DNA of 64,000 nucleotides from Lepidodermella squamata (Eukaryota; Animalia; Gastrotricha), in assembly GCA_047495785.1 (NCBI GenBank), contig JBLDXI010000032.1, forward strand, positions 2,914,001 through 2,978,000. Direction: 5' to 3'. The position numbers were made by a program, and so were the translations under genes. Under the pieces are notes generated by a model. That model ran no database searches, had not been told where the DNA came from, and saw nothing but the letters and a program-made list of their open reading frames with translations. This document shows, in pieces, positions 15,951-41,069 of this stretch; position 1 is the stretch's first letter, and each line of letters begins with the position of its first letter.

Positions 15951-16327
15951 AAAAATAATATAACAATATAGAAGCTTGCCTTAAGGTTTCAGGCGACGGT
16001 GCTCGAGTTGAGTTCTTTTTGTTGTAATATTAGAATCAAAACTCGGTGTTCTAACATATACTAGGCCAAGTATATGTTAGGACTATATGTAATTATAAGT
16101 TTACATAATTTTACATATTGGACAGTTGATTTTCACATATATTGGACACTAGATTTTTTAAGGAGGAGCACATATTGGTCAGTTGTCTATTGTTCAGACC
16201 CGTAAAACTCATGAAACCCAAGAAACCTGAGGAACCCAAAATAGCTTTATTATTCAAAATCAAACAATCTCTTGGAAAAGCTGGGGGGCTTGGGGCTCGA
16301 AAATCTGGCAGCATTCACCCCTGATAC

Positions 16328-16540
16328 CGAGAAAATCGAGCAGCATTCGGCCCCAATTTCGAGAAAATCGAGCAGCATTCGGCCACAATTTCGAGAAAAT
16401 CGAGCAGCATTCGGCCACAATTCAGTGAAAATCGAGCAGCAGTCAGCTCCGATGTCGATAAAACCCAGAACTCCACCGGGACAATTGCGAAATCCGAGCA
16501 GCAGTCGCCCTCAATATTGAGAAAATCGCGCAGCATTCCT
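16328..16540 (+). repeat. 32-bp minisatellite
   Basis: CGAGAAAATCGAGCAGCATTCGGCC(C/A)CAATTT occurs three times near-perfectly, then degenerates. A related unit occurs in reverse at ~13495-13660. Confidence 0.85.
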
Positions 16541-16798
16541 CTTGGATCCTGGAAATTGTCAAAACGGCGCCGTATTCGTCTTGCATTTCGTACCATTCCA
16601 TCAGCCTTCGTTCCTGGCTCGAACTGGTTCGACGACACGCTTCCTCGTACGGGATCGAAACCTTGATTGAGCTTGAGATCGACAATAACCAGATCGGCGA
16701 ACTAGTTGCCATGAGCCGAATTCACTCGCCTGGCTGATTTGATGAGCCGACAGTTCAAATAGCTCGAGCCATTGTGCGATTCTTTATCGTAGCAGCGT

Positions 16799-17047
16799 CA
16801 TGCTGTCGGCAGCGTCATCGGTGCCCATATTGCAAGCCGAAAATCCGCAACGACTGTCACGTTTATTTTTAATTGTTTATTAAATATATTATATTAAATA
16901 ATAATATTGTTAATCGGAATACAATGAAAATATTAAATAGCAACCCCTTCAACGTTCAACACGTTGCTAGGGGGCTCGGATGCGGTTTTTTTTCCCTAAA
17001 GCGGCAGCTGCTTCTAACCACTTGACGTCGTTATTCGCGCCAATCTG
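16799..17047 (+). repeat. Left TIR, outer element
   Basis: Reverse complement of 35435-35679. Direct repeat of 24741-24983. Confidence 0.95.
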
Positions 17048-17325
17048 AATATCCCTGTATTGTGACTGCTGATAGCATTGCTTTCGCTTTGCTTAAGGAA
17101 TGACTAATTATGTTGATATACCTCGCCCTGCTGTTACGCTAGTTTCGCCAGTTCAGAGTTAGTTCTGCCATGAAGCATTTTCTTATCGGATGGTTGCTTA
17201 TAGGTGTTACAAATTAATCACAGATCAAAGTTAATCACAGAACCATACATGATGCATTTCAAGCGGGCATGATGTGTTTACCTCTTTGTTTCAACTTTTT
17301 AAATGTATCTCTAGATTTTTACTTG

Positions 17326-20032
17326 ATGTCAAATCACAGTCTTGGGTCGGCAGGTTTGTTGAAGAAGTTAATGCTTCCAACTGCAACTACTGACGATGCA
17401 AGTACCCCTCGTGTTCTTGGAGGTTTCCTTCGATTTCTTTGAAAAAAACTGTGAGTCTCCTTCCTATATTATTTTTCAGTCCTCAATGGTGCCTCTGCGA
17501 TTCGGAGATCTCCTATGTTGCCTCTTTCGCCTTTGGTTTTGTCTATTGTCTCTACTCCGAAAGCTGTATTGTCGCCGTATATCGGTATTCTTGCCATCGA
17601 TAAAAAAATAGTTGCAATTTACAACTTTATTTCTTACTGGTATTAGCAAACTCTGCTAGTTCAGTTTTGACTGCAGTCACACCGCCTAGAATCGCCCCCA
17701 AGCGGTCGTTAGGCGCAGAAGCTGCTCCTCCTATTGGGCTAACACCGGCTAAAACCGTCCCCAAGCGATTGCTAGAAGGGAAAGCTTTGGAAGACTACAA
17801 AACAATCCGTTCATTAGGTGAGCATTTTATCTATTATGCCAGAATTTCCCTAATAATTGATTCTCAGAAGCTCAACTTGCTGCTACCAAGAGCAATCTTG
17901 ACGAATGTCGCCGTGAGAGGGACATTTTTAAGACTTTTGTACCTCAAGGATTGGCCCTCAACGTCAAGGAACAAAATCCATTAGCTTTATTGAGTCGCCA
18001 AAAACGATGCGATCGGCACAAAGGGCAGCTAATCAAGCCCTTGAATGCGCTGTTCGGGAGACTATCGAGCTTCGGTAGTTTCTATCCTGTCACCTCCCTG
18101 TCTGTACAAGTTAGTTTTTTAATTATTGCTCAGAATTCATCTACACCTCACTCGTTGTCTAGGTGAACTTTAGCCATGGTGTTGCTGCAAAGAAAATTTG
18201 GGTTGGTGACGATGAGGCTAGGAAAACAGCCCTTAGAAGGTAAGATTTAAACTATTGCTAGCAATTAGTAGCAACTGATGACTTGTTTTAATCTAGTCTC
18301 GTGCGAGATTACTCCACGAAGTATTGGTCCATGAGGACGGTGTTTAAAATACTAAAAACCTCAACATATCAAATAACTCAGCGCGAATTCGAACAAGAAA
18401 AGAAAATCCTAGCAAACATCCTGCCCATCCAGGTTGTTGTCGTTCCGGAGGGTAAAGACGTGACCAGTGCTGCTTTCGTGCTTCCTAGTCGTCAGATACC
18501 TTACCTTTTTCGCAATGGAATCGTTCCGAAGCCCGTGGCTCCAACTGTCAACATCCGTATTCAAGGCAAATACATTTTAAACTGAAATTTCCAATATTTA
18601 TTTTTATTTCTTTTCTAGGCGATGGTACGATTTTCCGGACGGGCAAATTTCCTCATTACCGACTCAATTACGGCTTTTTTCATCAGAAAGTCGCCGTCTC
18701 AACTGTAACCGAATACACTGCGGGCGTGTTTTTCGGCAAGGAATCGCGAGAAAACCTGGAATATTTATTGCCAGTATTCGATGATTTTAACGAGCTGAAA
18801 GTTACAGGCCTCACACTTGATGATGGTGTCAAATTAGATGTTACACTGTAAGTTGCCTCAGGCTTTTTCCAGAAGTCATTTATTTCAATATTCTTTAAAT
18901 ATAGTTCCATTTGCGCTGATCTACCGGCTATTGGCAAGCTGGTTGGAACTAGCCACACCGACGCGCTTGGCTGCCCATGTTGCGTCTTCAATTTTGTTGA
19001 CGACGCAAAGCCTTTGAATGTTCTCATCGACGAAAACGATCGCAAGCCGAAGCGCGATCTGCCTTCCAGCCTCGTTAAAATCGACGCTGACGACATTTAC
19101 TGGTGCTCTCTTCACTGTGCCTTGCGTATCGCGTTCCTTGTTCTTCGAGCGGTAAGATCGTCATATCTATTCTCATTGCTCTTATTATATTTTATTTTTT
19201 TTTATAGTTTTTTCTGTTTATGAAGGAGTCCGTGGTGGATTATGAGCTACGCATCTCCCAACTCGTCCAAAGTTACGACCGAAAGGCAGTTGTCAGCTTT
19301 GAAAAGAGCGAGGTGAAAATCAGCAACATGAATCACCACACGCTTTTCAAGCTGCTATTCGATGCTGACGAACTGTGGTCGCCGATGTCGGTCTGCAGGG
19401 GTGGTTGGGAAGTCGATTACGTCCTGAAGCAGCATCGCGGCTCGAAACCATTTAGCGACTTCCTCGCGCAAAAGCAGATTTCCGCCAAGTCTCTCACTCG
19501 CAAGGAGCTTGCTAGCGCAGCCGTTGACCACGGCTTTTTGGTCGAAGGGTCCCCGATTCAGGCCAAGTTGGTCCAGTTCGCTGAAGCCAAGAAGCTCTAC
19601 AAAAAGCTATTCGCTCTAATTCGCTGTAAAGATCAGTCTATTCCGATTCCCGATTCCGACGCAGATTTTCACGCTTTCGCGAACCTCGTCCGTCGGCTTT
19701 CGGGATGCTATACCCCCTACCTTCACATATTTCAATTCCACACTTGGGATAGACTTGAACGTCTTCGCCTCGCTGGAACCTATCTTGCCGCCATTTCGGG
19801 TGAAAATGTCGAAATCCTGCACAAGATCGGGAAAGAACAGCTTGCGCATCAAGTCTGTCTTATAGGCGGTCATGAGAGTCAGCAGATTATGGAATTGTGC
19901 AATGTCCGTTTGGCCTCGGATATTGGTGCGAATAATGCTTACATCGAATCTCAGCCAACTGTAGTTACATCAGCTGTCAACTTCAGCGATTCTAATGATT
20001 TCGAGCCATTCGATTTCACGTGCGATTGTTGA
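17326..20032 (+). CDS. RAG1/Transib/CMC-type DDE transposase, ~753 aa, 9 exons (outer copy)
   Basis: Exons 17326-17422, 17480-17584, 17647-17817, 17868-18109, 18163-18239, 18297-18565, 18619-18847, 18905-19151 and 19208-20032 join in frame (2262 nt). Motifs in RAG1-core order: IRIQGDGT (D1), GKESRENL, ICADLPA (D2), GCPCC, WCSLHCALRI, TPYLHIFQFH, SGENVEILHK (E). The start codon is uncertain. Confidence 0.85.
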
Positions 20033-21267
20033 TTTTTCTTATTTCAATACGACTAATATTTTGAGTATTAATCTGAGTCTTTCAATGGATGTTTTGCATG
20101 GCTTTGTTGACTAAAAATGAGTATTCGTTCATTACTTTCATTTTTCGATGGCGATCTCGTTGTAGTTATAATTCGCAAAAAATCTTGTTTTCAATCTTGA
20201 CTGAATGATAATTATTTGTGGTCTTAGCTAGTCCCACTAATCGATGGGCAATATATTTGTTTAATGCCGCCTTAATAATTGCTTGTATTACTGATTAGAG
20301 GATACGTCTCTGAAAATACGTTTTTCAAATAGGAATAATTGTGGTTTCATATATTCATTTTGTATAAAATTGACTACGCCGCTTTTCAATCAACACTATG
20401 TCTCAGCCGATTAATTCCTCTTTTCTTCGTGACTATTGATCGTTCCATATGTTGTTAACCCGTGCAAACCGACATCGGTGATCAGTTCATCATCATCGAA
20501 TAGCTGTTTGAAAATCGTGTGTTTTATTCTATTTTAATTATCACGTTCTGAGACGTCAACCGCCTTAATGATTTGGGGTCTTACCCAGTCCTACCGGTAT
20601 TTCGATAATTCTCCACCTTAAATAATTACAAAAATTATAATTATATTATTGGAAAAATCTATCCGGTGGAATGTCGGTTTTATGGCCATATAAAACCGCC
20701 TTGATATTGTTTAATAATGTATATTTTCTTCTCTGAGTTCGTTTTTTATAACGAAATCTCGTGCTTGATTAATATGGCGAATTCATTATTTTATTATCAT
20801 CGGCTGGTTTCATTGATATACGCTTTCCGATTTTCGATGAATTCGTATTAATTTAGCTCGACTTTCGTTTTCAGCTATCTCAATATTTTTTGTGATATTA
20901 TTCGATAATTTCAAAGTTTTACGCCGATAATGTATAGCGGTATACAAAGCCACCTTAATAATATTTATGAGCTCCTAATTGGAATTATCTCCTGATTTGC
21001 TATAAAATAGCATCCTCTCATTGAAACTCAGCTCTTTCTAAGCCGTTCTGTTATCTCTGCACCGACCTATTAATGGTATTGTTCGATCTTCCGAGCTAAA
21101 AATCTTCACTAATTTGCCATTCGGTAATAAATAAACAGGAAACAAATAAAAAGCATGCCATGCGTGTGTTTTATTACGTGTTAAAAATTGCGATTGTACA
21201 ATATTGCGTTGAAGCAGCCATCATTCATTAGACAAAAAGCAACGAGAAAATCGGACAATTAAATGTA

Positions 21268-21705
21268 TCACTTCTTGAACAAGCGCTTAGGTTTCGGCGC
21301 TGGTTGTATTTTGCCCAGCCTCGAACAAAAGAGCCGAAATAAGATCCGGCGTTCCTGCTTGGCAGCACTGCTGTTGCGATCGTGATCGGGGTAAAGTCGG
21401 TATCGATTGCTCATAAGCACGCGAGGCTCGAGATCGAAATAGGCCGCCACCTCCTCGTCGGTTGTAGGTGTTGTAGGGTGGATACGATTATCAGGATGCT
21501 AAAATATAATATAACATAGAGCCAAATAACAAAAATGAAATTAGACTAAAATTACCTCTTCAGCGGTTTTGCTTGGCGTCGTCTTCTGACGATCAGCCAC
21601 GATTCGGGGTTGACGCCGTTGTTTCGGGGTACTGGGAGTAGCCTTAACTTTTCGCTCCATGATATCTACCTTACGACAGGGGCGCTTATGACTTGTTGAT
21701 GACAT
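21268..21705 (-). CDS. Element-borne orphan A: 126 aa basic, Thr-Pro-rich protein, 2 exons
   Basis: Exons 21705-21556 and 21498-21268 are joined by a 57-bp GT-AG intron and stay in frame: MSSTSHKRPCRK...ATPSTPKQRR...TTPSKTAEE|HPDNR...PKPKRLFKK*. Confidence 0.65.
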
Positions 21706-21746
21706 GTTAAATAAAATGAGGTTCTAAAATAAATAAAAAACAGATT

Positions 21747-22337
21747 TTAGAATCGAACTGAATTTATACGAATTATAGCCTTGCAAATGGCTTGCGGCGA
21801 GTTTTCAATAATAGGTTTTTTCATAGAAAACGAGACGTTATTTACAAGGCTAGTTCTAGTGTTTCTTTTCACGGCAAACAGCGAAACGGCAAAGTCGAAA
21901 CGGCTGAAAATTTCGGCGAGATGTTCGGCCGATAGTTGAATGTAGCGCTTTTTCTCGCTACAAAATTCAAACATTTTACTCGATATCACATATTAGTCAC
22001 TGTTTACCCACCTTTTAAAAATTTCCAGCTGAGCCAACTTACCTACGGGAAAAACGCAATGACGGGCTACGACCTTGAGCTGATTCAGCATTGGCTTAGC
22101 TGCATCGCGATTAAGCTGGGTTTCGAGTGCTAGAGCCACTTGGTTAGCCAGAAATAGCATTTCTTTTCGGCGATCAAAAACAGCAAAAGGATCGAACAGC
22201 TTGAGTTCAAGGACGCGTACTAGCCGCACTTGTTGCTGTTTCTTTAAGTAATCGTCGACGCGCCGAAATTCAGTCACGGCAGAGCCATAAATCACAGGCT
22301 TCTTCAAAGTTGCGCGCTCTCGCAAACAATAGGCCAT
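21747..22337 (-). CDS. Element-borne orphan B: 178 aa protein, 2 exons
   Basis: ORFs 21993-22337 and 21747-21989 are joined in frame by a 54-bp GT-AG intron (22011-21958). Confidence 0.6.
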
Positions 22338-22339
22338 AA

Positions 22340-23148
22340 TTAAGGTGTATAATTAGTTAATGACAAAACTAAGGATCAAAAATATTCAATAGTATTAAAT
22401 AGGTAGATATATACAGAAATATCGAACAAATTAAGGTGGCTAACTGATGCCCAAACAAAATGAGCAATTAATGAGCGCGCAGCTGGATCAATGCGTAGAA
22501 TATAGAAACGCTTGGATGAGAAAAAACTAATGCCGCAATAATTATTATAATAATAGCACCAAGCCGCGGAATAGGCGCACTTTCCGCCTTAAGTAAAAAG
22601 ATTTTTAAGGTGGAGAGCGCAATATATGATAAGTCTTATAATAAGTGGTAGAGTTGTAACTGGGCCAAAGTAAAATATTTCGCGAATTTTTGATATATGT
22701 CACTCAAACCGACCGATGCCGCGAACACATGGAAGATTGAGATCGCTATTTCGACCGATCGTACATCAGAGAGACACACCGTGAATTCACGCCGCCTTAA
22801 TAAACGCCGGGCGGCGGGCGCGTTACTGCTTGGAGCGCGCGCACGCATATATAGCTTTACCAGGCACCTTCTAGGCACCAACAGGTGCGCTATACAACCT
22901 GAATTTCGACCCTTCCGACCACGGAATGACCACGGAATGACCACGGAAAGGTGTCAATATTTGAGAATAAAAGAATTCAATACGCGCGCAGAAGAATGGC
23001 ATACGATCGAACAATCGCACACCTTTCAATGCGCTGCGCGCGCGCATTCGAGTGGATAGGCGCTAATATTATTACGAATTGAAGCAAGTGGGAAGAGGAT
23101 GAAAAAAATTAAATACGCCTAAACCGCATAACTGAAAAGTAGCAAAAA
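22340..23148. promoter_or_regulatory. Putative bidirectional promoter region of the element
   Basis: Lies between the divergent starts of orphans B and C. Many GCGC(GC) tracts and an 11-bp ACCACGGAATG repeat x~3 (22918-22948). Confidence 0.4.
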
Positions 23149-23760
23149 ATGGGCAGGCGCAGAAATGCAGAGCAACTGGCTCAACATCGCGAACAAATGC
23201 GGTTGATACGCGCAAATAGGACTCCTGACGAAATAGAGAAAGTTCGTGAGCGCGATCGGCGCCGCAAACAAGCCAAAACTGCGCTAATTCAGTCCGTCAA
23301 ATCGCAAGGTAATTTTTGGTGAATTTTTAAGGCTGTTATAAATATATGAATAAAAATGCAGATCAGTGTGGCGCGGTAGCATACTTGCCAACGGGATGCA
23401 ACTACTCAGCGCGGACAATAAGCGAACGCGACTTCTTGCGAAAACAAGCATTGATGGCAGAAACGTTCGAGGCGGATAAAATTATTGGTAAATTCAAGTT
23501 TATTATATTTCCAGCCATATTCATCGCATTAATTTTCAGGGCTGTGCGATTTATCGCCGCTCATCGCCAACACACTGCCTCCACTCTCACCTGGCGAAAT
23601 CACGCCACTGCTGGCACCGGACGATGCCGCGCAAACGTGGTGGCAAGAAATTAAAGACGATATGAGAAGCAGCTACCTTTCGCCGCCACTGGCACGTTTT
23701 CGCATAGCGATTCTACCTAACTGTACTCAAAGCAAAATTCCGGCCATTGAATTTCCATAG
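23149..23760 (+). CDS. Element-borne orphan C: 168 aa, N-terminal basic helix (STPR-like), 3 exons
   Basis: Exons 23149-23308, 23362-23487 and 23540-23760 are in frame. MGRRRNAEQLAQHREQMRLIRANRTPDEIEKVRERDRRRK... followed by a Pro/acidic/Trp tail. Confidence 0.65.
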
Positions 23761-24011
23761 AAATAAAACAGAGATATAATAACGCCTTCTTTTATTTCAA
23801 CCGCGCTTTTTCAATCGATCATGAAAATATACCAAAGTTTGAGAAAAATTAAAGATATCGAAATTGCAGCAAGCCATTTGAGGATCAATTCAATTCTACT
23901 TTGCGAATAAGATCATTCATTATTATACATAATTATTACAAAAATCAGTTCAGACTTTTTCGGCTGTTTCGAACATAGAGAATAATTAGAAAAAGAAATG
24001 CAGTATAATCA

Positions 24012-24740
24012 CTACTGCTGAATATTGCCACGACCAGTCAACATGAGATCACCATTAGCAACAGTGGTTATATTAATTTTATCATTTTTTACAGCCAACA
24101 ACAGGCCAAAAAAAGCTTTAGAAACGTCCTTACGGTCTAAATTTTCTACAACGTGACTGAAGCAAACATCCTGATTTCTACACAAAACGCTGAGCTGATT
24201 TTGACAAAAGCGATCGTTGTCATCGACAAAACTTAAAATTGAAGAGCTAATTAAATGAATAGGCTGAGATGAGCTATCTAATACAACATCTACCGCACCT
24301 ACACTAATTTCTTCAGATTGGGCATCGGCTGATGATGATTCAACACAACACATGAGACTCTTCTTGGCGATCGGGGTGTATTTGTCCAAAATCGAGGTTG
24401 CTTTTCGCTTTGGTGCTGACAGACGGTCAAGAGGAACTCGCGATATCGGTATTTCTTCGTCAATCTGTTCCGGCTGCAAAGCAGGCTGCTGAAGGCGGCT
24501 TATCGAAAACTGAGTTGTCGGAATGATATCGCATCCGTCTCGATCTATAAATGAATACCGATATTTTCAATTCAAAAATTAGTCGTTGTAAATACTTACG
24601 GGGGTAATTTATCAGCCGAACTTCCTTGGAATATGCAAGACCATGAATCGCTGTATATAAAAATAAATATCGATAAGAAGTGAGACCAAATAATTATAAA
24701 ACTAACCTTCGCAGTCAGGGTAGGCAGACGAATCATCCAA
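24012..24740 (-). pseudogene. 3' half of the outer element's Rad21/Rec8 kleisin gene, split by the inner insertion
   Basis: Matches 31931-32659 and includes the C-terminal winged helix. Broken in exon 3 at ...CATCCAA|CATGCTG. Confidence 0.85.
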
Positions 24741-25257
24741 CATGCTGTCGGCAGCGTCATCGGTGCCCATATTGCAAGCCGAAAATCCGCAACGACTGTC
24801 ACGTTTATTTTTAATTGTTTATTAAATATATTATATTAAATAATAATATTGTTAATCGGAATACAATGAAAATATTAAATAGCAACCCCTTCAACGTTCA
24901 ACGTTGCTAGGGGGCTCGGATGCGGTTTTCCCTAAAGCGGCAGCTGCTTCTAACCACTTGACGTCGTTATTCGCGCCAATCTGAATATCCCTGTATTGTG
25001 ACTGCTGATAGCATTGCTTTCGCTTTGCTTAAGGGTAAATTATGTTGATATACCTCGCCCTGCTGTTACGCTAGTTTCGCCAGTTCAGAGTTAGTTCTGC
25101 CATGAAGCATTTTCTTATCGGATGGTTGCTTATAGGTGTTACAAATTAATCACAGATCAAAGTTAATCACAGAACCATACATGATGCATTTCAAGCGGGC
25201 ATGATGTATTTACCTCTTTGTTTCAACTTTTTAAATGTATCTCTAGATTTTTACTTG

Positions 25258-27967
25258 ATGTCAAATCACAGTCTTGGGTCGGCAGGTTTGTTGAAGAAGT
25301 TAATGCTTCCAACTGCAACTACTGACGATGCAAGTACCCCTCGTGTTCTTGGAGGTTTCCTTCGATTTCTTTGAAAAAAACTGTGAGTCTCCTTCCTATA
25401 TTATTTTTCAGTCCTCAATGGTGCCTCTGCGATTCGGAGATCTCCTATGTTGCCTCTTTCGCCTTTGGTTTTGTCTATTGTCTCTACTCCGAAAGCTGTA
25501 TTGTCGCCGTATATCGGTATTCTTGCCATCGATAAAAAAATAGTTGCAATTTACAATTTTATTTCTTACTGGTATTAGCAAACTCTGCTAGTTCAGTTTT
25601 GACTGCAGTCACACCGTCTAGAATCGCCCCCAAGCGGTCGTTAGGCGCAGAAGCTGCTCCTCCTATTGGGCTAACACCGGCTAAAACCGTCCCCAAGCGA
25701 TTGCTAGAAGGGAAAGCTTTGGAAGACTACAAAACAATCCGTTCATTAGGTGAGCATTTTATCTATTATGCCAGAATTTCCCTAATAATTGATTCTCAGA
25801 AGCTCAACTTGCTGCTACCAAGAGCAATCTTGACGAATGTCGCCGTGAGAGGGACATTTTTAAGACTTTTGTACCTCAAGGATTGGCCCTCAACGTCAAG
25901 GAACAAAATCCATTAGCTTTATTGAGTCGCCAAAAACGATGCGATCGGCACAAAGGGCAGCTAATCAAGCCCTTGAATGCGCTGTTCGGGAGACTATCGA
26001 GCTTCGGTAGTTTCTATCCTGTCACCTCCCTGTCTGTACAAGTTAGTTTTTTTAATTATCGCTCAGAATTCATCTACACCTCACTCGTTGTCTAGGTGAA
26101 CTTTAGCCATGGTGTTGCTGCAAAGAAAATTTGGGTTGGTGACGATGAGGCTAGGAAAACAGCCCTTAGAAGGTAAGGTTTAAACTATTGCTAGCAATTA
26201 GTAGCAACTGATGACTTGTTTTAATCTAGTCTCGTGCGAGATTACTCCACGAAGTATTGGTCCATGAGGACGGTGTTTAAAATACTAAAAACCTCAACAT
26301 ATCAAATAACTCAGCGCGAATTCGAACAAGAAAAGAAAATCCTAGCAAACATCCTGCCCATCCAGGTTGTTGTCGTTCCAGAGGGTAAAGACGTGACCAG
26401 TGCTGCTTTCGTGCTTCCTAGTCGTCAGATACCTTACCTTTTTCGCAATGGAATCGTTCCGAAGCCCATGGCTCCAACTGTCAACATCCGTATTCAAGGC
26501 AAATACATTTTAAACTGAAATTTCCAATATTTAATTTTTATTTCTTTTCTAGGCGATGGTACGATTTTCCGGACGGGCAAATTTCCTCATTACCGACTCA
26601 ATTACGGCTTTTTTCATCAGAAAGTCGCCGTCTCAACTGTAACCGAATACACTGCGGGCGTGTTTTTCGGCAAGGAATCGCGAGAAAACCTGGAATATTT
26701 ATTGCCAGTATTCGATGATTTTAACGAGCTGAAAGTTACAGGCCTCACACTTGATGATGGTGTCAAATTAGATGTTACACTGTAAGTTGCCTCAGGCTTT
26801 TTCCAGAAGTCATTTATTTCAATATTCTTTAAATATAGTTCCATTTGCGCTGATCTACCGGCTATTGGCAAGCTGGTTGGAACTAGCCACACCGACGCGC
26901 TTGGCTGCCCATGTTGCGTCTTCAATTTTGTTGACGACGCAAAGCCTTTGAATGTTCTCATCGACGAAAACGATCGCAAGCCGAAGCGCGATCTGCCTTC
27001 CAGCCTCGTTAAAATCGACGCTGACGACATTTACTGGTGCTCTCTTCACTGTGCCTTGCGTATCGCGTTCCTTGTTCTTCGAGCGGTAAGATCGTCATAT
27101 CTATTCTCATTGCTCTTAATATATTTTATTTTTTTTTTATAGTTTTTTCTGTTTATGAAGGAGTCCGTGGTGGATTATGAGCTACGCATCTCCCAACTCG
27201 TCCAAAGTTACGACCGAAAGGCAGTTGTCAGCTTTGAAAAGAGCGAGGTGAAAATCAGCAACATGAATCACCACACGCTTTTCAAGCTGCTATTCGATGC
27301 TGACGAACTGTGGTCGCCGATGTCGGTCTGCAGGGGTGGTTGGGAAGTCGATTACGTCCTGAAGCAGCATCGCGGCTCGAAACCATTTAGCGACTTCCTC
27401 GCGCAAAAGCAGATTTCCGCCAAGTCTCTCACTCGCAAGGAGCTTGCTAGCGCAGCCGTTGACCACGGCTTTTTGGTCGAAGGGTCCCCGATTCAGGCCA
27501 AGTTGGTCCAGTTCGCTGAAGCCAAGAAGCTCTACAAAAAGCTATTCGCTCTAATTCGCTGTAAAGATCAGTCTATTCCGATTCCCGATTCCGACGCAGA
27601 TTTTCACGCTTTCGCGAACCTCGTCCGTCGGCTTTCGGGATGCTATACCCCCTACCTTCATATCTTTCAATTCCACACTTGGGATAGACTTGAACGTCTT
27701 CGCCTCGCTGGAACCTATCTTGCCGCCATTTCGGGTGAAAATGTCGAAATCCTGCACAAGATCGGGAAAGAACAGCTTGCGCATCAAGTCTGTCTTATAG
27801 GCGGTCATGAGAGTCAGCAGATTATGGAATTGTGCAATGTCCGTTTGGCCTCGGATATTGGTGCGAATAATGCTTACATCGAATCTCAGCCAACTGTAGT
27901 TACATCAGCTGTCAACTTCAGCGATTCTAATGACTTCGAGCCATTCGATTTCACGTGCGATTGTTGA
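25258..27967 (+). CDS. RAG1/Transib/CMC-type DDE transposase (inner copy)
   Basis: Same exon structure and motifs as 17326-20032. The last-exon 270 aa are identical at protein level. Confidence 0.85.
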
Positions 27968-29186
27968 TTTTTCTTATTTCAATACGACTAATATTCTGAG
28001 TATTAATCTGAGTCTTTCAATGGATGTTTTGCATGGTTTTGTTGACTAAAAATGAGTATTCGTTCATTACTTTCATTTTTCGATGGCGATCTCGTTGTAG
28101 TTATAATTCGCAAAAAATCTTGTTTTCAATCTTGACTGAATGATAATTATTTGTGGTCTTAGCTAGTCCCACTAATCGATGGGCAATATATTTGTTTAAC
28201 GCCGCCTTAATAATTGCTTGTATTACTGATTAGAGGATACGTCTCTGAGAATACGTTTTTCAAATAGGAATAATTGTGGTTTCATATATTCATTTTGTAT
28301 AAAATTGACTACGCCGCTTTTCAATCAACACTATGTATTAATTCCTCTTTTCTTCGTGACTATTGATCGTTCCATATGTTGTTAACCCGTGCAAACCGAC
28401 ATCGGTGATCAGTTCATCATCATCGAATAGCTGTTTGAAAAGCGTGTGTTTTATTCTATTTTAATTATCACGTTCTGAGACGTCAACCGCCTTAATGATT
28501 TGGGGTCTTACCCAGTCCTACCGGTATTTCGATAATTCTCCACCTTAAATAATTTCAAAAATTATAATTATATTATTGGAAAAATCTATCCGGTGGAATG
28601 TCGGTTTTATGGCCATATAAAACCGCCTTGATATTGTTTAATAATGTATATTTTCTTCTCTGAGTTCGTTTTTTATAACGAAATCTCGTGCTTGATTAAT
28701 ATGGCGAATTCATTATTTTATTATCATCGGCTGGTTTCATTGATATACGCTTTCCGATTATCGATGAATTCGTATTAATTTAGCTCGACTTTCGTTTTCA
28801 GCTATCTCAATATTTTTTGTGATATTATTCGATAATTTCAAAGTTTTACGCCGATAATGTATACAAAGCCACCTTAATAATATTTATGAGCTCCTAATTG
28901 GAATTATCTCCTGATTTGCTATAAAATAGCATCCTCTCATTGAAACTCAGCTCTTTCTAAGCCGTTCTGTTATCTCTGCACCGACCTATTAATGGTATTG
29001 TTCGATCTTCCGAGCTAAAAATCTTCACTAATTTGCCATTCGGTAATAAATAAACAGGAAACAAATAAAAAGCATGCCATGCGTGTGTTTTATTACGTGT
29101 TAAAAATTGCGATTGTACAATATTGCGTTGAAGCAGCCATCATTCATTAGACAAAAAGCAACGAGAAAATCGGACAATTAAATGTA

Positions 29187-29624
29187 TCACTTCTTGAACA
29201 AGCGCTTAGGTTTCGGCGCTGGTTGTATTTTGCCCAGCCTCGAACAAAAGAGCCGAAATAAGATCCGGCGTTCCTGCTTGGCAGCACTGCTGTTGCGATC
29301 GTGATCGGGGTAAAGTCGGTATCGATTGCTCATAAGCACGCGAGGCTCGAGATCGAAATAGGCCGCCACCTCCTCGTCGGTTGTAGGTGTTGTAGGGTGG
29401 ATACGATTATCAGGATGCTAAAATATAATATAACATAGAGCCAAATAACAAAAATGAAATTAGACTAAAATTACCTCTTCAGCGGTTTTGCTTGGCGTCG
29501 TCTTCTGACGATCAGCCACGATTCGGGGTTGTCGCCGTTGTTTCGGGGTACTGGGAGTAGCCTTAACTTTTCGCTCCATGATATCTACCTTACGACAGGG
29601 GCGCTTATGACTTGTTGATGACAT
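29187..29624 (-). CDS. Orphan A (inner copy)
   Basis: Duplicate of 21268-21705, intact. Confidence 0.65.
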
Positions 29625-29665
29625 GTTAAATAAAATGAGGTTCTAAAATAAATAAAAAACAGATT

Positions 29666-30256
29666 TTAGAATCGAACTGAATTTATACGAATTATAGCCT
29701 TGCAAATGGCTTGCGGCGAGTTTTCAATAATAGGTTTTTTCATAGAAAACGAGACGTTATTTACAAGGCTAGTTCTAGTGTTTCTTTTCACGGCAAACAG
29801 CGAAACGGCAAAGTCGAAACGGCTGAAAATTTCGGCGAGATGTTCGGCCGATAGTTGAATGTAGCGCTTTTTCTCGCTACAAAATTCAAACATTTTACTC
29901 GATATCACATATTAGTCACTGTTTACCCACCTTTTAAAAATTTCCAGCTGAGCCAACTTACCTACGGGAAAAACGCAATGACGGGCTACGACCTTGAGCT
30001 GATTCAGCATTGGCTTAGCTGCATCGCGATTAAGCTGGGTTTCGAGTGCTAGAGCCACTTGGTTAGCCAGAAATAGCATTTCTTTTCGGCGATCAAAAAC
30101 AGCTAAAGGATCGAACAGCTTGAGTTCAAGGACGCGTACTAGCCGCACTTGTTGCTGTTTCTTTAAGTAATCGTCGACGCGCCGAAATTCAGTCACGGCA
30201 GAGCCATAAATCACAGGCTTCTTCAAAGTTGCGCGCTCTCGCAAACAATAGGCCAT
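29666..30256 (-). CDS. Orphan B (inner copy)
   Basis: Duplicate of 21747-22337 with one F>L change. Confidence 0.6.
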
Positions 30257-31067
30257 AATTAAGGTGTATAATTAGTTAATGACAAAACTAAGGATCAAAA
30301 ATATTCAATAGTATTAAATAGGTAGATATATACAGAAATATCGAACAAATTAAGGTGGCTAACTGATGCCCAAACAAAATGAGCAATTAATGAGCGCGCA
30401 GCTGGATCAATGCGTAGAATATAGAAACGCTTGGATGAGAAAAAACTAATGCCGCAATAATTATTATAATAATAGCACCAAGCCGCGGAATAGGCGCACT
30501 TTCCGCCTTAAGTAAAAAGATTTTTAAGGTGGAGAGCGCAATATATGATAAGTCTTATAATAAGTGGTAGAGTTGTAACTGGGCCAAAGTAAAATATTTC
30601 GCGAATTTTTGATATATGTCACTCAAACCGACCGATGCCGCGAACACATGGAAGATTGAGATCGCTATTTCGACCGATCGTACATCAGAGAGACACACCG
30701 TGAATTCACGCCGCCTTAATAAACGCCGGGCGGCGGGCGCGTTACTGCTTGGAGCGCGCGCACGCATATATAGCTTTACCAGGCACCTTCTAGGCACCAA
30801 CAGGTGCGCTATACAACCTGAATTTCGACCCTTCCGACCACGGAATGACCACGGAATGACCACGGAAAGGTGTCAATATTTGAGAATAAAAGAATTCAAT
30901 ACGCGCGCAGAAGAATGGCATACGATCGAACAATCGCACACCTTTCAATGCGCTGCGCGCGCGCATTCGAGTGGATAGGCGCTAATATTATTACGAATTG
31001 AAGCAAGTGGGAAGAGGATGAAAAAAATTAAATACGCCTAAACCGCATAACTGAAAAGTAGCAAAAA

Positions 31068-31679
31068 ATGGGCAGGCGCAGAAATGCAGAGCAACTGGCT
31101 CAACATCGCGAACAAATGCGGTTGATACGCGCAAATAGGACTCCTGACGAAATAGAGAAAGTTCGTGAGCGCGATCGGCGCCGCAAACAAGCCAAAACTG
31201 CGCTAATTCAGTCCGTCAAATCGCAAGGTAATTTTTGGTGAATTTTTAAGGCTGTTATAAATATATGAATAAAAATGCAGATCAGTGTGGCGCGGTAGCA
31301 TACTTGCCAACGGGATGCAACTACTCAGCGCGGACAATAAGCGAACGCGACTTCTTGCGAAAACAAGCATTGATGGCAGAAACGTTCGAGGCGGATAAAA
31401 TTATTGGTAAATTCAAGTTTATTATATTTTCAGCCATATTCATCGCATTAATTTTCAGGGCTGTGCGATTTATCGCCGCTCATCGCCAACACACTGCCTC
31501 CACTCTCACCTGGCGAAATCACGCCACTGCTGGCACCGGACGATGCCGCGCAAACGTGGTGGCAAGAAATTAAAGACGATATGAGAAGCAGCTACCTTTC
31601 GCCGCCACTGGCACGTTTTCGCATAGCGATTCTACCTAACTGTACTCAAAGCAAAATTCCGGCCATTGAATTTCCATAG
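31068..31679 (+). CDS. Orphan C (inner copy)
   Basis: Duplicate of 23149-23760, intact. Confidence 0.65.
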
Positions 31680-31930
31680 CAATAAAACAGAGATATAATA
31701 ACGCCTTCTTTTATTTCAACCGCGCTTTTTCAATCGATCATGAAAATATACCAAAGTTTGAGAAAAATTAAAGATATCGAAATTGCAGCAAGCCATTTGG
31801 GGATCAATTCAATTCTACTTTGCGAATAAGATCATTCATTATTATACATAATTATTACAAAAATCAGTTCAGACTTTTTCGGCTGTTTCGAACATAGAGA
31901 ATAATTAGAAAAAGAAATGCAGTATAATCA

Positions 31931-33605
31931 CTACTGCTGAATATTGCCACGACCAGTCAACATGAGATCACCATTAGCAACAGTGGTTATATTAATTTTA
32001 TCATTTTTTACAGCCAACAACAGGCCAAAAAAAGCTTTAGAAACGTCCTTACGGTCTAAATTTTCTACAACGTGACTGAAGCAAACATCCTGATTTCTAC
32101 ACAAAACGCTGAGCTGATTTTGACAAAAGCGATCGTTGTCATCGACAAAACTTAAAATTGAAGAGCTAATTAAATGAATAGGCTGAGATGAGCTATCTAA
32201 TACAACATCTACCGCACCTACACTAATTTCTTCAGATTGGGCATCGGCTGATGATGATTCAACACAACACATGAGACTCTTCTTGGCGATCGGGGTGTAT
32301 TTGTCCAAAATCGAGGTTGCTTTTCGCTTTGGTGCTGACAGACGGTCAAGAGGAACTCGCGATATCGGTATTTCTTCGTCAATCTGTTCCGGCTGCAAAG
32401 CAGGCTGCTGAAGGCGGCTTATCGAAAACTGAGTTGTCGGAATGATATCGCATCCGTCTCGATCTATAAATGAATACCGATATTTTCAATTCAAAAATTA
32501 GTCGTTGTAAATACTTACGGGGGTAATTTATCAGCCGAACTTCCTTGGAATATGCAAGACCATGAATCGCTGTATATAAAAATAAATATCGATAAGAAGT
32601 GAGACCAAATAATTATAAAACTAACCTTCGCAGTCAGGGTAGGCAGACGAATCATCCAAGATATTCGTGAATGGTAAAGTATCTAAACAAATATAGTAGA
32701 TAACGCTAACGAATTAATGAAAATCCCAACCTAGAATGCTGAAAATGTTAGTCCTTAAACGAGAAGAAACTTCGATAGCAGGCCTTCTGATGAGAACGTC
32801 AGCTGGGATGATGTGATCACTTCTTAGGCCACCAATGCGATCCAAAGCTATTGAGCGACTGAAGAGTGGGGCAAACCAGAAGTCGAATTCCTTCTCTTCA
32901 TACTCCAGCGTCGTGGCGGAGTTGAGGTGCTTTGCGGTATCGAAAATAGCAGCACGATCATCCCATTCAGGCACGTCTTTCAAAGTCAAGTACGACGCAT
33001 GCTCTTCTTTCATCTCCTGAGTTAACAGATCAAAGATCGGGATGGTTGAATCGATGTCTCCGTTAACCAAGAGTCCAAAGCCATCGTCAACGATGGGTTC
33101 AGAATCCACATCAAAGTTGCAATTAGTACCGATCAACGGGGCACAAGGCAGCTCAAGCTGGTGCGAAGCTGACTCCAAGTAGACCACATCGCATAGCTGA
33201 AAGCAACATCATAGTTGAAAAAAACAAAAATAACAATCTTGGGTATATAATTACCGAACGAATAATGGGCACATCACAGGATGGCAAGCGGCACCCCAGC
33301 TGCTCGAGAGCTTTCGACACGTAGGTGTTGGTATCGATAGTCTCGACGCGCTTAACAATATCAACCTGCAAAATGCAAAGGGAGTCATTAGCATCATGAA
33401 ACAGCCTGCTGACTTTCAGGCTGTAAATAGTACTAAGAACATAAATTAGCTGGCCGTAAGTTCGAAGCTCGAGCGTAACTGCGGAACGAGCAAGATCACA
33501 AAACTGCTTAACGTCAACGGTGGCAACGATCGACGACAGCAGCGGCTGATTCGCGATAACACGGCGATAAACATTGCTACGGATAAAAGTCGTCAAACTC
33601 TCCAT
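31931..33605 (-). CDS. Rad21/Rec8-family cohesin alpha-kleisin, ~485 aa, 5 exons, transposon-encoded
   Basis: Exons 33605-33255, 33196-32731, 32682-32626, 32569-32519 and 32463-31931 are joined by four 48-58 bp GT-AG introns into a 1458-nt open frame. N-terminal LELRTYGQLIYVLSTIYSLKVSRLFHDANDSL resembles the Rad21_Rec8_N motif (human RAD21 [31 protein letters not shown]). C-terminal FSHVVENLDRKDVSKAFFGLLLAVKNDKINITTVANGDLML resembles the kleisin winged helix (RAD21 [25 protein letters not shown]). Confidence 0.85.
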
Positions 33606-34168
33606 CTAATAATGACAAAGCGGACTTTCAGGTGAGATTAAAATTGCAAGCCGGTGAGTATAAACTATAAACCAAGCGTTGCCTTAAAGTGATAGACGCA
33701 ATAAAATCTAACAGCACCAAGGAAGTCGTAAATAGCTGGCATGTAATCAAACATCAGTTACTTAAAATGCGGTTTGCGTTCTACCCTCGAGCTAACCTAT
33801 ATCTCCGACAATTATATGAGACATCGCAAGCAAGCACCAAGAAGCACCATAAGGGACAAAGTTTCTAAGTGTTTGCTATCAACAACATATTAGGGCATTT
33901 AGCAGTCTCAAATCCAACACGGGCAGATTGGCGCGCGAATAACGACGTCAAGTGGTTAGAAGCAGCTGCCGCTTTAGGGAAAACCACATCCGAGCCCCCT
34001 AGCAACGTTGAACGTTGAAGGGGTTGCTATTTAATATTTTCATTGTATTCCGATTAACAATATTATTATTTAATATAATATATTTAATAAACAATTAAAA
34101 ATAAACGTGACAGTCGTTGCGGATTTTCGGCTTGCAATATGGGCACCGATGACGCTGCCGACAGCATG

Positions 34169-35116
34169 AAGATATTCGTGAATGGTAAAGTATCTAAACA
34201 AATATAGTAGATAACGCTAACGAATTAATGAAAATCCCAACCTAGAATGCTGAAAATGTTAGTCCTTAAACGAGAAGAAACTTCGATAGCAGGCCTTCTG
34301 ATGAGAACGTCAGCTGGGATGATGTGATCACTTCTTAGGCCACCAATGCGATCCAAAGCTATTGAGCGACTGAAGAGTGGGGCAAACCAGAAGTCGAATT
34401 CCTTCTCTTCATACTCCAGCGTCGTGGCGGAGTTGAGGTGCTTTGCGGTATCGAAAATAGCAGCACGATCATCCCATTCAGGCACGTCTTTCAAAGTCAA
34501 GTACGACGCATGCTCTTCTTTCATCTCCTGAGTTAACAGATCAAAGATCGGGATGGTTGAATCGATGTCTCCGTTAACCAAGAGTCCAAAGCCATCGTCA
34601 ACGATGGGTTCAGAATCCACATCAAAGTTGCAATTAGTACCGATCAACGGGGCACAAGGCAGCTCAAGCTGGTGCGAAGCTGACTCCAAGTAGACCACAT
34701 CGCATAGCTGAAAGCAACATCATAGTTGAAAAAAACAAAAATAACAATCTTGGGTATATAATTACCGAACGAATAATGGGCACATCACAGGATGGCAAGC
34801 GGCACCCCAGCTGCTCGAGAGCTTTCGACACGTAGGTGTTGGTATCGATAGTCTCGACGCGCTTAACAATATCAACCTGCAAAATGCAAAGGGAGTCATT
34901 AGCATCATGAAACAGCCTGCTGACTTTCAGGCTGTAAATAGTACTAAGAACATAAATTAGCTGGCCGTAAGTTCGAAGCTCGAGCGTAACTGCGGAACGA
35001 GCAAGATCACAAAACTGCTTAACGTCAACGGTGGCAACGATCGACGACAGCAGCGGCTGATTCGCGATAACACGGCGATAAACATTGCTACGGATAAAAG
35101 TCGTCAAACTCTCCAT
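34169..35116 (-). pseudogene. 5' half of the outer element's kleisin gene
   Basis: Matches 32658-33605 (exons 1, 2 and the start of exon 3). Confidence 0.85.
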
Positions 35117-35434
35117 CTAATAATGACAAAGCGGACTTTCAGGTGAGATTAAAATTGCAAGCCGGTGAGTACAAACTATAAACCAAGCGTTGCCTTAAAG
35201 TGATAGACGCAATAAAATCTAACAGCACCAAGGAAGTCGTAAATAGCTGGCATGTAATCAAACATCAGTTACTTAAAATGCGGTTTGCGTTCTACCCTCG
35301 AGCTAACCTATATCTCCGACAATTATATGAGACATCGCAAGCAAGCACCAAGAAGCACCATAAGGGACAAAGTTTCTAAGTGTTTGCTATCAACAACATA
35401 TTAGGGCATTTAGCAGTCTCAAATCCAACACGGG

Positions 35435-35679
35435 CAGATTGGCGCGCGAATAACGACGTCAAGTGGTTAGAAGCAGCTGCCGCTTTAGGGAAAACCGCAT
35501 CCGAGCCCCCTAGCAACGTTGAACGTTGAAGGGGTTGCTATTTAATATTTTCATTGTATTCCGATTAACAATATTATTATTTAATATAATATATTTAATA
35601 AACAATTAAAAATAAACGTGACAGTCGTTGCGGATTTTCGGCTTGCAATATGGGCACCGATGACGCTGCCGACAGCATG
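35435..35679 (-). repeat. Right TIR, outer element
   Basis: Reverse complement of 16799-17047. Direct repeat of 33924-34168. Confidence 0.95.
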
Positions 35680-36234
35680 GTGCCAGCTTGACGCGGAGAT
35701 CCGGCGGCAAAAAAGCGAGTGAAAATCAAAATGAAAATCGACATGGTTTTACGCTTCCTGTCAACCATTCCTGTCAGCTTGATAAACGCCGCATTCAATG
35801 CATGGATGATTGATGTTGCGGTTATTGGGCTGGAACACGGTGATTTTGAGATGCCTAGGCCGCTCGATCACATGCTACTCACGTGCTAGGGTCAGCTTTT
35901 ATACGACTGGGATAACCCCATCCCAAGTTTCTGCTGCAGTTAAATCTAACGCGATTTATTGGAATTTATGGTTTATGTTTTGGCTGTGAACCTATCGCTT
36001 TGTTACTCCCGATTACTGGCCACTTTAACTTCCATCTTTACTTAGTTGGGCAATCCTTCATCGGTAGCTGTAAATCTGAGGTCATACAGCCTTAGGTCAA
36101 GAACAGAACTTCTCAGATTGGCAATTCGGCTTTCGACAACTCCCCTGTTTACTATCCTTGACATTTTAATTTATGACGCTTGTCATTTAGGACTAAAGCA
36201 TTCAACGTTTCATTTTTAACAACGATTTGAGCTG

Positions 36235-38494: not shown

Positions 38495-39335
38495 ACGATT
38501 TTGCCTGCTTGCGAAAAGATCACTCATCAAAGATCACTGATCAAATCAGGCGGGCCCGATTGCAGAGCAGTGCTGACGGAGATGGTGGCTGAGGCTAACG
38601 AAGCTGGCCAAACCTTTGAACTGAATAAATGGATGCGTCAGTATTCTATTTGGCGCGAGCGAGTTCGAGGTATTCCAGCTGAGTGCAAATAAGACCCAGT
38701 TCAAGTTTTTTACAAGTTTATGAACGAGCCTACGTTGTACGAGGGTCTGGCTGATTTCATGGACTTTTATTTAAAGTGCGCCTTAAAATCGCACTGCGAG
38801 TCAATCGTGGAGTCGATGGGGTCGGTTTTAGATCGACATGCGAGCCACGATCGACCCGTTAGCGACGAAGTTGTTTCAAATAAAACCTTTATTCACTGGA
38901 ATGGTCCGAATCCTGCAAACGAAAAATCAACAGCATACATAGAATCAGCTTTGAACCATCACGTCAAAGGGAAGGCGTGGCACTTATTCAAGAACCGGTC
39001 GGAAGAAAGACGGCTGAAATTGCATCGCGTCAGCAAAGATGTTGATCGTTGATCGACTTGCCAAGCAGAAGGGCAAAATGGAATTTTGATCTCTCTTGTG
39101 TTCACATTTTTCATCAAATAAACTGTGTGAAATGCGCGATTCTTTTCCGCGTTTAATTTATTGTCTTAATTTTTCCCATTGTAACGCTCAATTTCAGTTA
39201 GGGAAGCTCCATACCTAATCTTCACACAAGCTTCCCAAAGGAGGCTTCCCGAAGGTTCCCACGATTTGTGAAGTGATCAACGCCAGCTGAAACTAGTTTC
39301 CCGATTAAAAAAAATATTTTCCCAAATCTTCCCGA
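38495..39335 (+). mobile_element. hAT-like transposon 3' remnant, copy 3 (most complete)
   Basis: ORF 38720-39052 (LKSHCESIVESMGSVL...DRPVSDEVVSNKTFIHWNGP) resembles a hAT C-terminal dimerisation motif. Frameshifted, with a TTCCC-rich end. Confidence 0.5.
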
Positions 39336-39932
39336 ATATTTGTGCTCAATGGAGAATTGGGAAAACGCGTTTCCCACGAATCTTAAGAACAGATAATCAA
39401 TGTCTAAACCTGAAACATGTCATTTTTAGCTCATTTCCAAGTGCTGAGATGTCGCCTTATTACTCGGAATAATGTAATAATGATTCATCTTCCAACTTGG
39501 TAGATAAATCATTATTGTTAACCCTGGTCTATGCCTTGAAGTCAAAGAGACCACCAATCATACGCAACTCAACGAATGGTTTTATTCATGGTATTAAATG
39601 CCTTATATACGATGCTCCCAGACAACGATATCAATAGATGAATAGATAGTCATTAGTTGAATGTCGTTGCTTGGTGCATCCCAGGTCTACATTATTACAT
39701 CATTCCGAGTTGAATTTTACAACATGGTTGAATCCCTTGTCGCGGCGTTTCACAGCATACTGATGACTCTCATATTCGTCAACGACCGTTTTCTCCCCAT
39801 ATGTACATGTTTACAGACATTCGTGTCAGGTTTTCTCCATATCGTGACAGATTTAATATTAATAGAATTTAGCATTGCCTTCACATGGTATGTATTCCGC
39901 CTTCTTTTACGTAACTATATATTTTGAAAAAA

Positions 39933-40796
39933 ATGACTACTTCTAAAATGTGTTTCATCGCTTCTGCGATCCTAGCTGTTATTCCTGCTACAGATGCATT
40001 GCAATGCTATACAGGAGAGTCAACAAGTTCAAGCCTGTCTTATTTTTCTTCTTCCGCCACTTTCCCGTCAACTGGTTTCCTGTGTGCAAAAACCTTCGTT
40101 CAACTCGATATTCAAGGATCGTTCGGGTTGAGAACGTCAACAATTTCCTACGTTTGGAACGCAACTGACGTCAGCGCCGTGCCAAACGCGCCAGATTGTG
40201 ACGGAATTTACGAAACTTCAGTTGCAACTAGCGAAGCCGGCATTGTTGGTAAGGTCTACATGCGAATATGCTTCTGCTGTGGGGATAACTGCAACGACGC
40301 GCGGGTGGACCAGCGCTGCAACGACCCACCGGTGTTCACGCATCAATGTAAGAGTTACGTATCAACTGGCGCCTCGATGTCGCCAAAATTGCCGTCCTAC
40401 AAAGCGATTGATGTCGACTGTACAAAGACACAGCTTTGCATCAAGGCCTACGGCGGTGTTTCTGCGAATTACAGTGCAGCCTTAAGGGAACCTGCCCCAA
40501 TGTACGTGTGGGGTTGTAGCACGTTGGGCAATATTACCTGTGGGACGAATATTGCGAAGCGGGCAGACAGCCGTGGCTATGCGTCACAAACTACTTGCAC
40601 GTGCTGCGGTAATTTGTGCAATGACGCGCGAATGGACTCGGCACTTGCAAACAAGGTAGATTGCGGAGCATATGCTGCAACATCTGCTGCAACATCACCT
40701 ACGTCAGATCGAGCTGCAAAATCTTTTTCGTCCCATGTCTCATGGTCATTGATTGCAGCAGCTCTTCTGAATTTGTCTATTCAATTCGGAATTTGA
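39933..40796 (+). CDS. Intronless GPI-anchored two-domain Ly6-like protein, copy 3
   Basis: Paralogue of copies 1 and 2. ATG at 39933. Confidence 0.8.
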   Translation: MTTSKMCFIASAILAVIPATDALQCYTGESTSSSLSYFSSSATFPSTGFLCAKTFVQLDIQGSFGLRTSTISYVWNATDVSAVPNAPDCDGIYETSVATSEAGIVGKVYMRICFCCGDNCNDARVDQRCNDPPVFTHQCKSYVSTGASMSPKLPSYKAIDVDCTKTQLCIKAYGGVSANYSAALREPAPMYVWGCSTLGNITCGTNIAKRADSRGYASQTTCTCCGNLCNDARMDSALANKVDCGAYAATSAATSPTSDRAAKSFSSHVSWSLIAAALLNLSIQFGI

Positions 40797-41069
40797 AAAT
40801 ACATAACACCATGGAAATGAATATATTCTCTTGATTTTTTTTATCACTATCATTCATTAACATGGTCTATCGAACCATCGCTAAATTGAACGTATGACCT
40901 GGTATCAATTAAGCAATGACATTAATGAAAAGTGTTCATGTTTATTGTTTAAATATTTTCTCTACATGTCGCTCTGCTATGCATTTTTCTGATCATTGGC
41001 ATTCGTCTCCTTCGGTTTAAAATCTTGCCAGCATTTGTGTAAATTTTAATAAAAGTTCCATGCCTACTT

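Follow-up and report, generated by a model that had tools for sequence, protein, structure and literature searches.

A young, self-nested DNA transposon with a kleisin-like cargo gene in the gastrotrich Lepidodermella squamata

DNA transposons carrying extra host-type genes, e.g. RAG2-like or Myb-like partners, are known, and the CACTA/Mirage/Chapaev/Transib (CMCT) clade of DDE transposons also includes the ancestor of RAG1. Members of this clade share the transposase signature D..D..C(2)C..H(4)H..E, mostly 5′-CA..TG-3′ termini and target site duplications (TSDs) of 2 to 5 bp (PMC12730594). Here, an element of this kind is described which is located in a 64,000-nt stretch of Lepidodermella squamata DNA (contig JBLDXI010000032.1 of assembly GCA_047495785.1, positions 2,914,001 to 2,978,000), referred to below as the window. 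Besides a transposase gene, it contains a gene that very probably encodes a kleisin. All three features of the clade were found, namely the signature, CA..TG termini and a 2-bp TSD. Of the two copies present in the window, the inner one has AA as its TSD and the outer one GT. Its motifs and ends place the element in the CMCT clade, within which it represents a rare lineage. Long terminal inverted repeats (TIRs), a multi-exon transposase and a second gene, which is often present in the clade, are further common traits. By contrast, its transposase matches no curated family or solved structure, and a kleisin as second gene is unreported for any member.

Kleisins are the ring-closing subunits of cohesin and condensin. 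In alpha-kleisins, the N-terminal domain binds to the neck of SMC3 (SMC, structural maintenance of chromosomes) and the C-terminal winged helix to the head of SMC1. RAG-clade recombinases are linked to cohesin in vertebrate V(D)J recombination. Cargo-bearing CMCT transposons are known, while a kleisin as cargo is unprecedented. An initial annotation, made from the letters of the sequence, had noted that no transposon with such cargo was known to it, and a full-text literature search yielded no description of one. In fungi, transposons of the Kyakuja/Dileera/Zisupton, Plavaka, EnSpm, Harbinger and Helitron lineages carry TET/JBP dioxygenase genes (PMC12730594). Like the kleisin-like gene, these are intact host-type chromatin genes positioned as extra genes inside the TIRs, in some cases within the CMCT clade. 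The fungal elements, however, carry an enzyme that acts on DNA methylation, in contrast to the structural SMC-complex subunit found as cargo here. Their hosts are fungi, whereas the host studied here encodes TRPM-type channels.

The order of TIR, transposase, convergent partner gene and TIR is reminiscent of ProtoRAG and Transib elements with a RAG2-like partner. The zinc motifs of the transposase are also arranged in the same way as in the RAG1 core, and the D-D and D-E spacings (80 and 276 aa in the element) are similar. Transib and RAG elements, as reportedly described by Kapitonov and Jurka in 2005, generate TSDs of 5 bp and possess heptamer-like CAC(A/T)(A/G)TG termini. The element, on the other hand, has a TSD of 2 bp and CATGCTG ends, and its partner resembles a kleisin instead of a kelch/PHD protein of the RAG2 type. 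Moreover, no piece of the transposase matched Pfam RAG1 or a solved RAG1 or Transib chain. An assignment to Transib/RAG (ProtoRAG) proper was rejected for the length of the TSD, the ends and the partner gene. The designation RAG1-like in the initial annotation thus holds at the level of the wide CMCT clade, where it is backed by the motifs, but not for Transib/RAG proper. Another parallel is provided by Paramecium, where a developmental condensin I binds to the PiggyMac machinery and is needed for PiggyMac (10.1101/2025.10.03.680307). There, too, a specialised SMC-kleisin complex is tied functionally and physically to a cleavage machine of the transposase type. In Paramecium, however, the host genome encodes both the domesticated transposase and its partner, a condensin, whereas the kleisin considered here is encoded by an active transposon.

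Anatomy of the element and its insertion into a second copy

The inner copy of the transposon is a unit of 9,428 bp (24741-34168). An initial inverted-repeat call gave arms of 236 nt (24741-24976 and 33933-34168), which were lengthened by BLAST to approximately 245 nt with 98.8% identity. The TIRs end with 5′-CATG (CATG...CATG), the complete termini being given in Table 1. Between them lie two convergent genes, the transposase gene on the plus strand and the kleisin-like gene on the minus strand. The BLAST self-comparison of the window revealed that the inner copy sits within an outer copy of the same element (16799-24740 plus 34171-35679). Positions 16799-24740 are 99.3% identical to 24741-32659 over 7.9 kb, and positions 32658-34168 are 99.9% identical to 34169-35679 over 1.5 kb. 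This A-A′-B-B′ order is the expected look of an element copy inserted into another copy of itself. The outer copy bears the same TIR at both ends and is bordered on both flanks by GT (16797-98 and 35680-81), which represents its TSD.

Since the inner copy keeps the uninterrupted target site (ATCATCCAAGATATT, at about 32650-32665), its own TSD of 2 bp (AA) can be read directly, and the empty site rules out a longer duplication. The insertion has hit exon 3 of the outer copy's kleisin gene and thereby split this gene. The nested arrangement is thus proof that the entire unit transposes, kleisin included, and it establishes 2 bp as the length of the TSD. Between the copies, 28 substitutions and several indels, including two of 8 bp, were counted. 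The unit is a very young cut-and-paste DNA transposon. Both a TIR/TSD-bounded unit of 9.4 kb and the convergence of its genes had been proposed at the outset. The TIRs, the CATG ends, the 2-bp TSD, the empty site and the strands of the two genes bear this out, and we regard the anatomy as described here as very likely correct.

Contigs of three public runs were placed on positions 28201-34200 of the window. Run X1 is DNA. Run X2 belongs to a different study with a different organism label, and its designation as RNA is a guess. At positions 28555, 28760, 28858 and 31800, public DNA and RNA contigs show the variant of the outer copy and not that of the inner one. Either most copies in the genome differ from the inner one at these positions, or the inner copy is missing from the sampled runs (a possible insertion polymorphism). 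The target of the outer copy (GCAGCGT / GTGCCAGC; 16785-16830 and 35670-35695) loosely resembles the subterminal sequence GCAGCGTCATCGGTGCCC of the TIR, which may be due to chance or may hint at a target preference.

The kleisin-like gene

The kleisin-like gene consists of five exons with GT..AG junctions (Table 1). A single X2 contig of 1,035 nt with a depth of 74 lacks all four introns at precisely the predicted junctions. The stretches skipped by this contig (33254-33197, 32730-32683, 32625-32570 and 32518-32464) all end with CT..AC on the plus strand, corresponding to GT..AG on the strand of the gene, and none of these joints was seen in the DNA run X1. Coverage by X2 spans 31.6-33.6 kb, with none at 29.4-31.0 kb or at 33.6-34.2 kb, where the TIR is located. 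As the contig joins the predicted exons and the coverage stays inside the element, the gene is transcribed within the element and spliced as modelled. The intact exon 3 of the contig indicates that the transcript derives from an uninterrupted copy.

The intact five-exon gene of 485 aa postulated on the minus strand was thus exact to all four junctions, and the proposed examination of expression had a positive outcome in the RNA-like contig. The cargo gene is complete, comprising both terminal regions, four introns spliced as predicted and an upstream region inside the element. A Pack-type or transduplicated fragment, which the initial annotation had already disfavoured, was rejected because the expressed, correctly spliced open reading frame (ORF) extends over the full length, from the one terminal domain to the other, and is interrupted by four introns. 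Immediately upstream of the ATG, a good 3′ splice acceptor (TTATTAG, 33606-33612, minus strand) was detected. RNA coverage ends at this position and a leader was not seen. The acceptor would fit spliced-leader trans-splicing of a transposon gene.

With regard to the encoded protein, exon 1 gave a match to Pfam Rad21_Rec8_N (PF04825) of 28.2 bits (cut-off 23.1, E 2.3e-6), in which residues 27-93 align to profile positions 32-100 of 110. Language-model features of this exon scored 0.94 to Rad21_Rec8_N clusters, 205 of 256 features being shared. The family matched by the N-domain is Rad21/Rec8 and not Nse4 or Cnd2. The last 95 residues scored 0.95 to clusters of the C-terminal winged helix-turn-helix of kleisins (203/256 features shared). 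Since these clusters are a mixture of Cnd2, CNDH2_C and Rad21_Rec8, the C-terminus points to a kleisin only, and a cohesin type can be suggested from the N-terminus alone. The long linker is acidic, as had been claimed, with 49 D/E against 25 K/R within residues 111-400, and it is probably disordered. An ExxR motif, the separase site that is typical but not universal in the kleisin linker, is absent from the 485 aa. A PDB sequence search with the exons for solved structures gave no match, and comparison of codon usage and GC content at third codon positions between the kleisin gene, the transposase gene and host genes was uninformative. Taken together, the protein in all likelihood belongs to the kleisin family. 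What it has in common with the alpha-kleisins Rad21/Scc1 and Rec8 is the Rad21_Rec8_N domain, the long acidic linker, a putative winged helix at the very C-terminus and a length in the kleisin range. What separates it from them is its strong divergence, with scores of 28 bits for the N-terminal and 13 bits for the C-terminal region, the lack of the first helix and of ExxR, and the fact that it is encoded in, and carried by, a transposon.

All 28 point differences that distinguish the copies lie outside the kleisin span of 1,675 bp, in which about five would be expected (P about 0.007 under uniformity). Likewise, the X1 and X2 contigs contain no variant in the kleisin coding sequence. A ratio of nonsynonymous to synonymous substitution rates (dN/dS) is not computable for this gene because there are zero substitutions between the copies. 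The substitution-free span fits either constraint or very recent homogenisation. In the exons of the catalytic core of the transposase, four of five substitutions between the copies are synonymous, and all three single-base indels in the transposase stretch lie in predicted introns.

The transposase and the spacer

The DDE transposase gene comprises at least seven exons, the boundaries of which were deduced from splice signals. The six introns deduced in this way (25750-99, 26042-95, 26173-229, ~26499-552, 26782-838 and 27086-142) have lengths of 50-57 nt, similar to the four confirmed kleisin introns. After their removal, the frame is open for 685 aa, the start codon lying upstream. The motifs GDGT (253-256), CAD (332-334), CPCC (352-355), HIFQFH (584-589) and GENVE (609-613) follow each other in the order D..D..C(2)C..H(4)H..E. 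Thus, the spliced plus-strand transposase of the initial annotation stands with an open model and ordered motifs. The D, D and E residues listed in Table 1 are proposed to be catalytic.

An exhaustive search of 1.84 billion representative proteins with the last exon yielded two partial homologues with 42-46% identity, located on contigs of 0.6-1.5 kb without context. Both keep the H(4)H motif and the S.EN.E region. One of them (L001, Logan contig of SRR21620664, 86-1141; 42% identical) has extra introns where the element has a single exon, and it retains H(4)H, S.EN.E..H and the C-terminal motif EPFDF.CD. A word-indexed protein search with the last exon and a metagenome locus scan with the transposase profile yielded nothing. 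In a language-model atlas, a transposase exon reached scores of at most 0.86, to unrelated clusters.

In the spacer between the genes and in the N-terminal transposase exons, Pfam detected no domain in 15 ORFs, and an Rfam search of the whole window returned nothing. The spacer harbours an inverted fragment of the last transposase exon (28341-28460, minus strand, 85-90% identical to 27272-27337, plus strand), which may have been left behind by a rearrangement or may stem from a related element. For 29196-30267, the DNA run X1 contains a second, diverged version at about the depth of the element itself. Because of this paralogue at similar depth, the region is common to another repeat family. 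It holds two minus-strand ORFs (30271-29915 and 29911-29669) and gave no RNA in X2. RNA-like X2 contigs are sparse at 28.2-29.2 kb and may represent the 3′ untranslated region (UTR) of the transposase transcript.

Table 1. Features of the inner and outer copies (positions in the window)
Feature	Position	Strand	Remarks
Inner copy, left TIR	24741..24983	+	starts 5′-CATGCTGTCGG
Inner copy, right TIR	33924..34168	-	ends ...CCGACAGCATG-3′
Inner copy, TSD AA (2 bp)	24739..24740 (left), 34169-34170 (right)	.	empty site at 32658-32659 in the inner copy itself
Kleisin-like gene	31931..33605	-	5 exons, 485 aa, stop included
Kleisin-like exons	33605-33255, 33196-32731, 32682-32626, 32569-32519, 32463-31931	-	GT..AG junctions
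Kleisin transcript, 3′ UTR	31706..31930	-	X2 RNA-like contig
Kleisin upstream region in the element	33606..33923	-	without RNA coverage; AG acceptor (TTATTAG) right before ATG
DDE transposase gene	25579..27967	+	at least 7 exons, boundaries inferred; start codon further upstream
Transposase exons	~25579-25749, 25800-26041, 26096-26172, 26230-26498, 26553-26781, 26839-27085, 27143-27964 + stop	+
Proposed first catalytic D	26555-26557	+	in GDGT; direct reading
Proposed second catalytic D	26852-26854	+	in CAD; D334
C(2)C zinc motif CPCC	26906..26917	+	18 residues after proposed second D; definition PMC12730594
H(4)H motif HIFQFH	27659-27676	+	conserved in both homologues found
Proposed catalytic E in SGENVE	27737-27739 or 27746-27748	+	conserved in both homologues found
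Spacer between the two stop codons	27968..31930	.	~4 kb, no recognisable gene
Outer copy, left 7.9 kb	16799..24740	+	left TIR 16799-17047, intact transposase (last exon 19220-20032), kleisin 3′ part
Outer copy, kleisin 3′ part	24740-24707, 24650-24600, 24544-24012	-	exon 3 remainder, exon 4, exon 5
Outer copy, right 1.5 kb	34171..35679	+	kleisin 5′ part, right TIR 35435-35679
Outer copy, kleisin 5′ part	35116-34766, 34707-34242, 34193-34171	-	exon 1, exon 2, exon 3 start

Possible role of the kleisin and genomic surroundings

As the best explanation of the whole locus, a young CMCT-clade transposon with a retained, functional kleisin gene is proposed, a reading in which we place moderate confidence. 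Several results weigh against it. The Pfam profile Rad21_Rec8 (PF04824) matched the last exon weakly and below its cut-off (12.7 versus 22.7 bits, E 0.08) at the extreme C-terminus (approximately residues 433-466), and the C-terminal features resemble those of condensin kleisins no less than those of cohesin kleisins. At the N-terminus, Pfam left the first 26 residues unaligned, so that the first canonical helix (profile positions 1-31, ‘MFY...WLAA’) was unmatched. AlphaFold gave an unusable model of the C-terminal 95 aa alone (predicted local distance difference test, pLDDT, 46), and a word-indexed protein search and a metagenome locus scan with exon 1 as query revealed no relative of the kleisin. 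For the transposase, neither any exon nor a three-sequence profile matched Pfam or a solved structure, and the AlphaFold model of the last exon, calculated with a three-sequence alignment, was unusable as well (pLDDT 42). Finally, the nested layout is based on one assembly, the junction of which is not visibly bridged by short-read contigs. Of the two kleisin hallmarks that had been attributed to the gene, the N-domain therefore exceeded the Pfam cut-off in the exon-wise search, albeit with its first helix missing, while the winged helix fell short of it. An upstream exon that might provide the missing helix was rejected, since there is no in-frame donor and RNA coverage ends at the ATG.

According to the proposed explanation, the kleisin would be a gene that the element has retained for its own use. 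The protein might dock on the SMC3 neck of the host with its N-terminal helices and on the SMC1 head with its C-terminal winged helix, and the result would be an element-made cohesin-like complex that lacks the ExxR site for separase. The element would most likely profit from it in the germ line, where the donor site may be kept beside its sister or the homologue, which would serve as template for filling the excision gap with a new copy. Alternatively, the complex might bring together the two ends, which are 9 kb apart. Links between SMC complexes and transposition machines have precedents in the Paramecium condensin mentioned above and in the relation of Ty1 integrase to separase and cohesin removal (PMC4378997). 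This functional part of the explanation, docking on SMC proteins and aid to the element, is tentative, as is the meiotic bias that had been suggested at the outset.

An element-specific cohesin-like complex with host SMC ATPases that aids transposition or copy gain has to be weighed against three other explanations and is, on its own, a possible but uncertain one. It is conceivable that the kleisin is passive cargo, for instance a fast-evolving meiotic paralogue of a host kleisin that was captured together with its introns and promoter and plays no role in transposition. Capture of host-like genes is known in the CMCT clade and others, as exemplified by TET/JBP in fungal lineages (PMC12730594), and, given the youth of the copies, no selection is required to account for an intact frame. 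However, the gene is not a fragment but complete, its four precise introns have been kept, and it is transcribed within the element with a contig depth above that of the region downstream of the transposase. With only 28 bits to the kleisin consensus, it is unlikely to be a canonical RAD21 copied recently, and the lack of inter-copy differences in the kleisin span also speaks against a mere passenger. Passive cargo, the main rival, is to be considered doubtful. The protein might instead act as a decoy or antagonist which, without forming a working ring, binds one SMC partner of the host unproductively and weakens an SMC-based process that keeps the element in check, for example one involving cohesin, condensin or the silencing of excised DNA by an SMC5/6-type complex. 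In agreement with such a role, the N-terminal Pfam match is limited to profile positions 32-100, ExxR is lacking and the C-terminus is as condensin-like as cohesin-like. That cohesin status affects the integration of another element is illustrated by Ty1, whose integrase binds to separase and which is favoured by removal of cohesin (PMC4378997). Nevertheless, the protein has the two docking ends in the order that a bridging kleisin needs, its N-domain matches Rad21/Rec8 instead of Nse4 or Cnd2, and no direct evidence points to inhibition. This antagonistic role is improbable.

There is also the question of whether the nested duplication is an assembly error and the ‘element’ a host kleisin locus situated between chance inverted repeats. 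Several differences specific to the inner copy are homopolymer-length changes typical of long-read error, and the DNA-run contigs carry the outer-copy variants at the four positions given above. A mis-join, however, would not yield exact junctions of TIR and target plus a 2-bp TSD for each of the two copies, and the substitutions together with the two 8-bp indels demonstrate that the copies are distinct sequences. We consider an artefact highly improbable.

Should the kleisin of the transposon prove to be adaptive, the element would be the first known eukaryotic mobile element to encode one of the core SMC-complex subunits, and it would constitute a natural link between a transposase of the RAG1 clade and the SMC machinery. 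Provided that the protein engages SMC proteins of the host, chromosome cohesion or loop extrusion would be manipulated by a selfish element to serve its repair or synapsis, which bears on the copy gain of cut-and-paste elements and on the link between the RAG clade and cohesin in vertebrate V(D)J recombination. Even with the gene as passive cargo, the locus would still show clearly how a DNA transposon can spread an entire multi-exon gene. With a young element, intact frames in both genes and an expressed kleisin, the system lends itself to direct tests.

Outside the nested pair, another repeat family with three copies (6475-8972, 11770-15777 and 38538-41063; 91-99% identical) was identified, whose ORFs of approximately 300 aa (7750-8706, 14757-15674 and 39924-40796) have no Pfam match. 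As this family occurs on both sides of the pair, the neighbourhood is rich in mobile DNA. A 32-bp tandem repeat with about seven units (16267-16490) lies 300 bp to the left of the left end of the outer copy. Further downstream, a tandem array on the plus strand (45600-58100) with a period of approximately 5.4 kb contains TRPM-like channel genes with very long exons. Its ORFs 49492-51147, 55002-55979 and 56268-58046 revealed the Pfam domain LSDAT_euk and TRPM2-like domains, and the closest public relative of one of these genes is only 37% identical. Finally, an interstitial, degenerate telomere-like (CCCTAA)n tract is located at 61662-61850.

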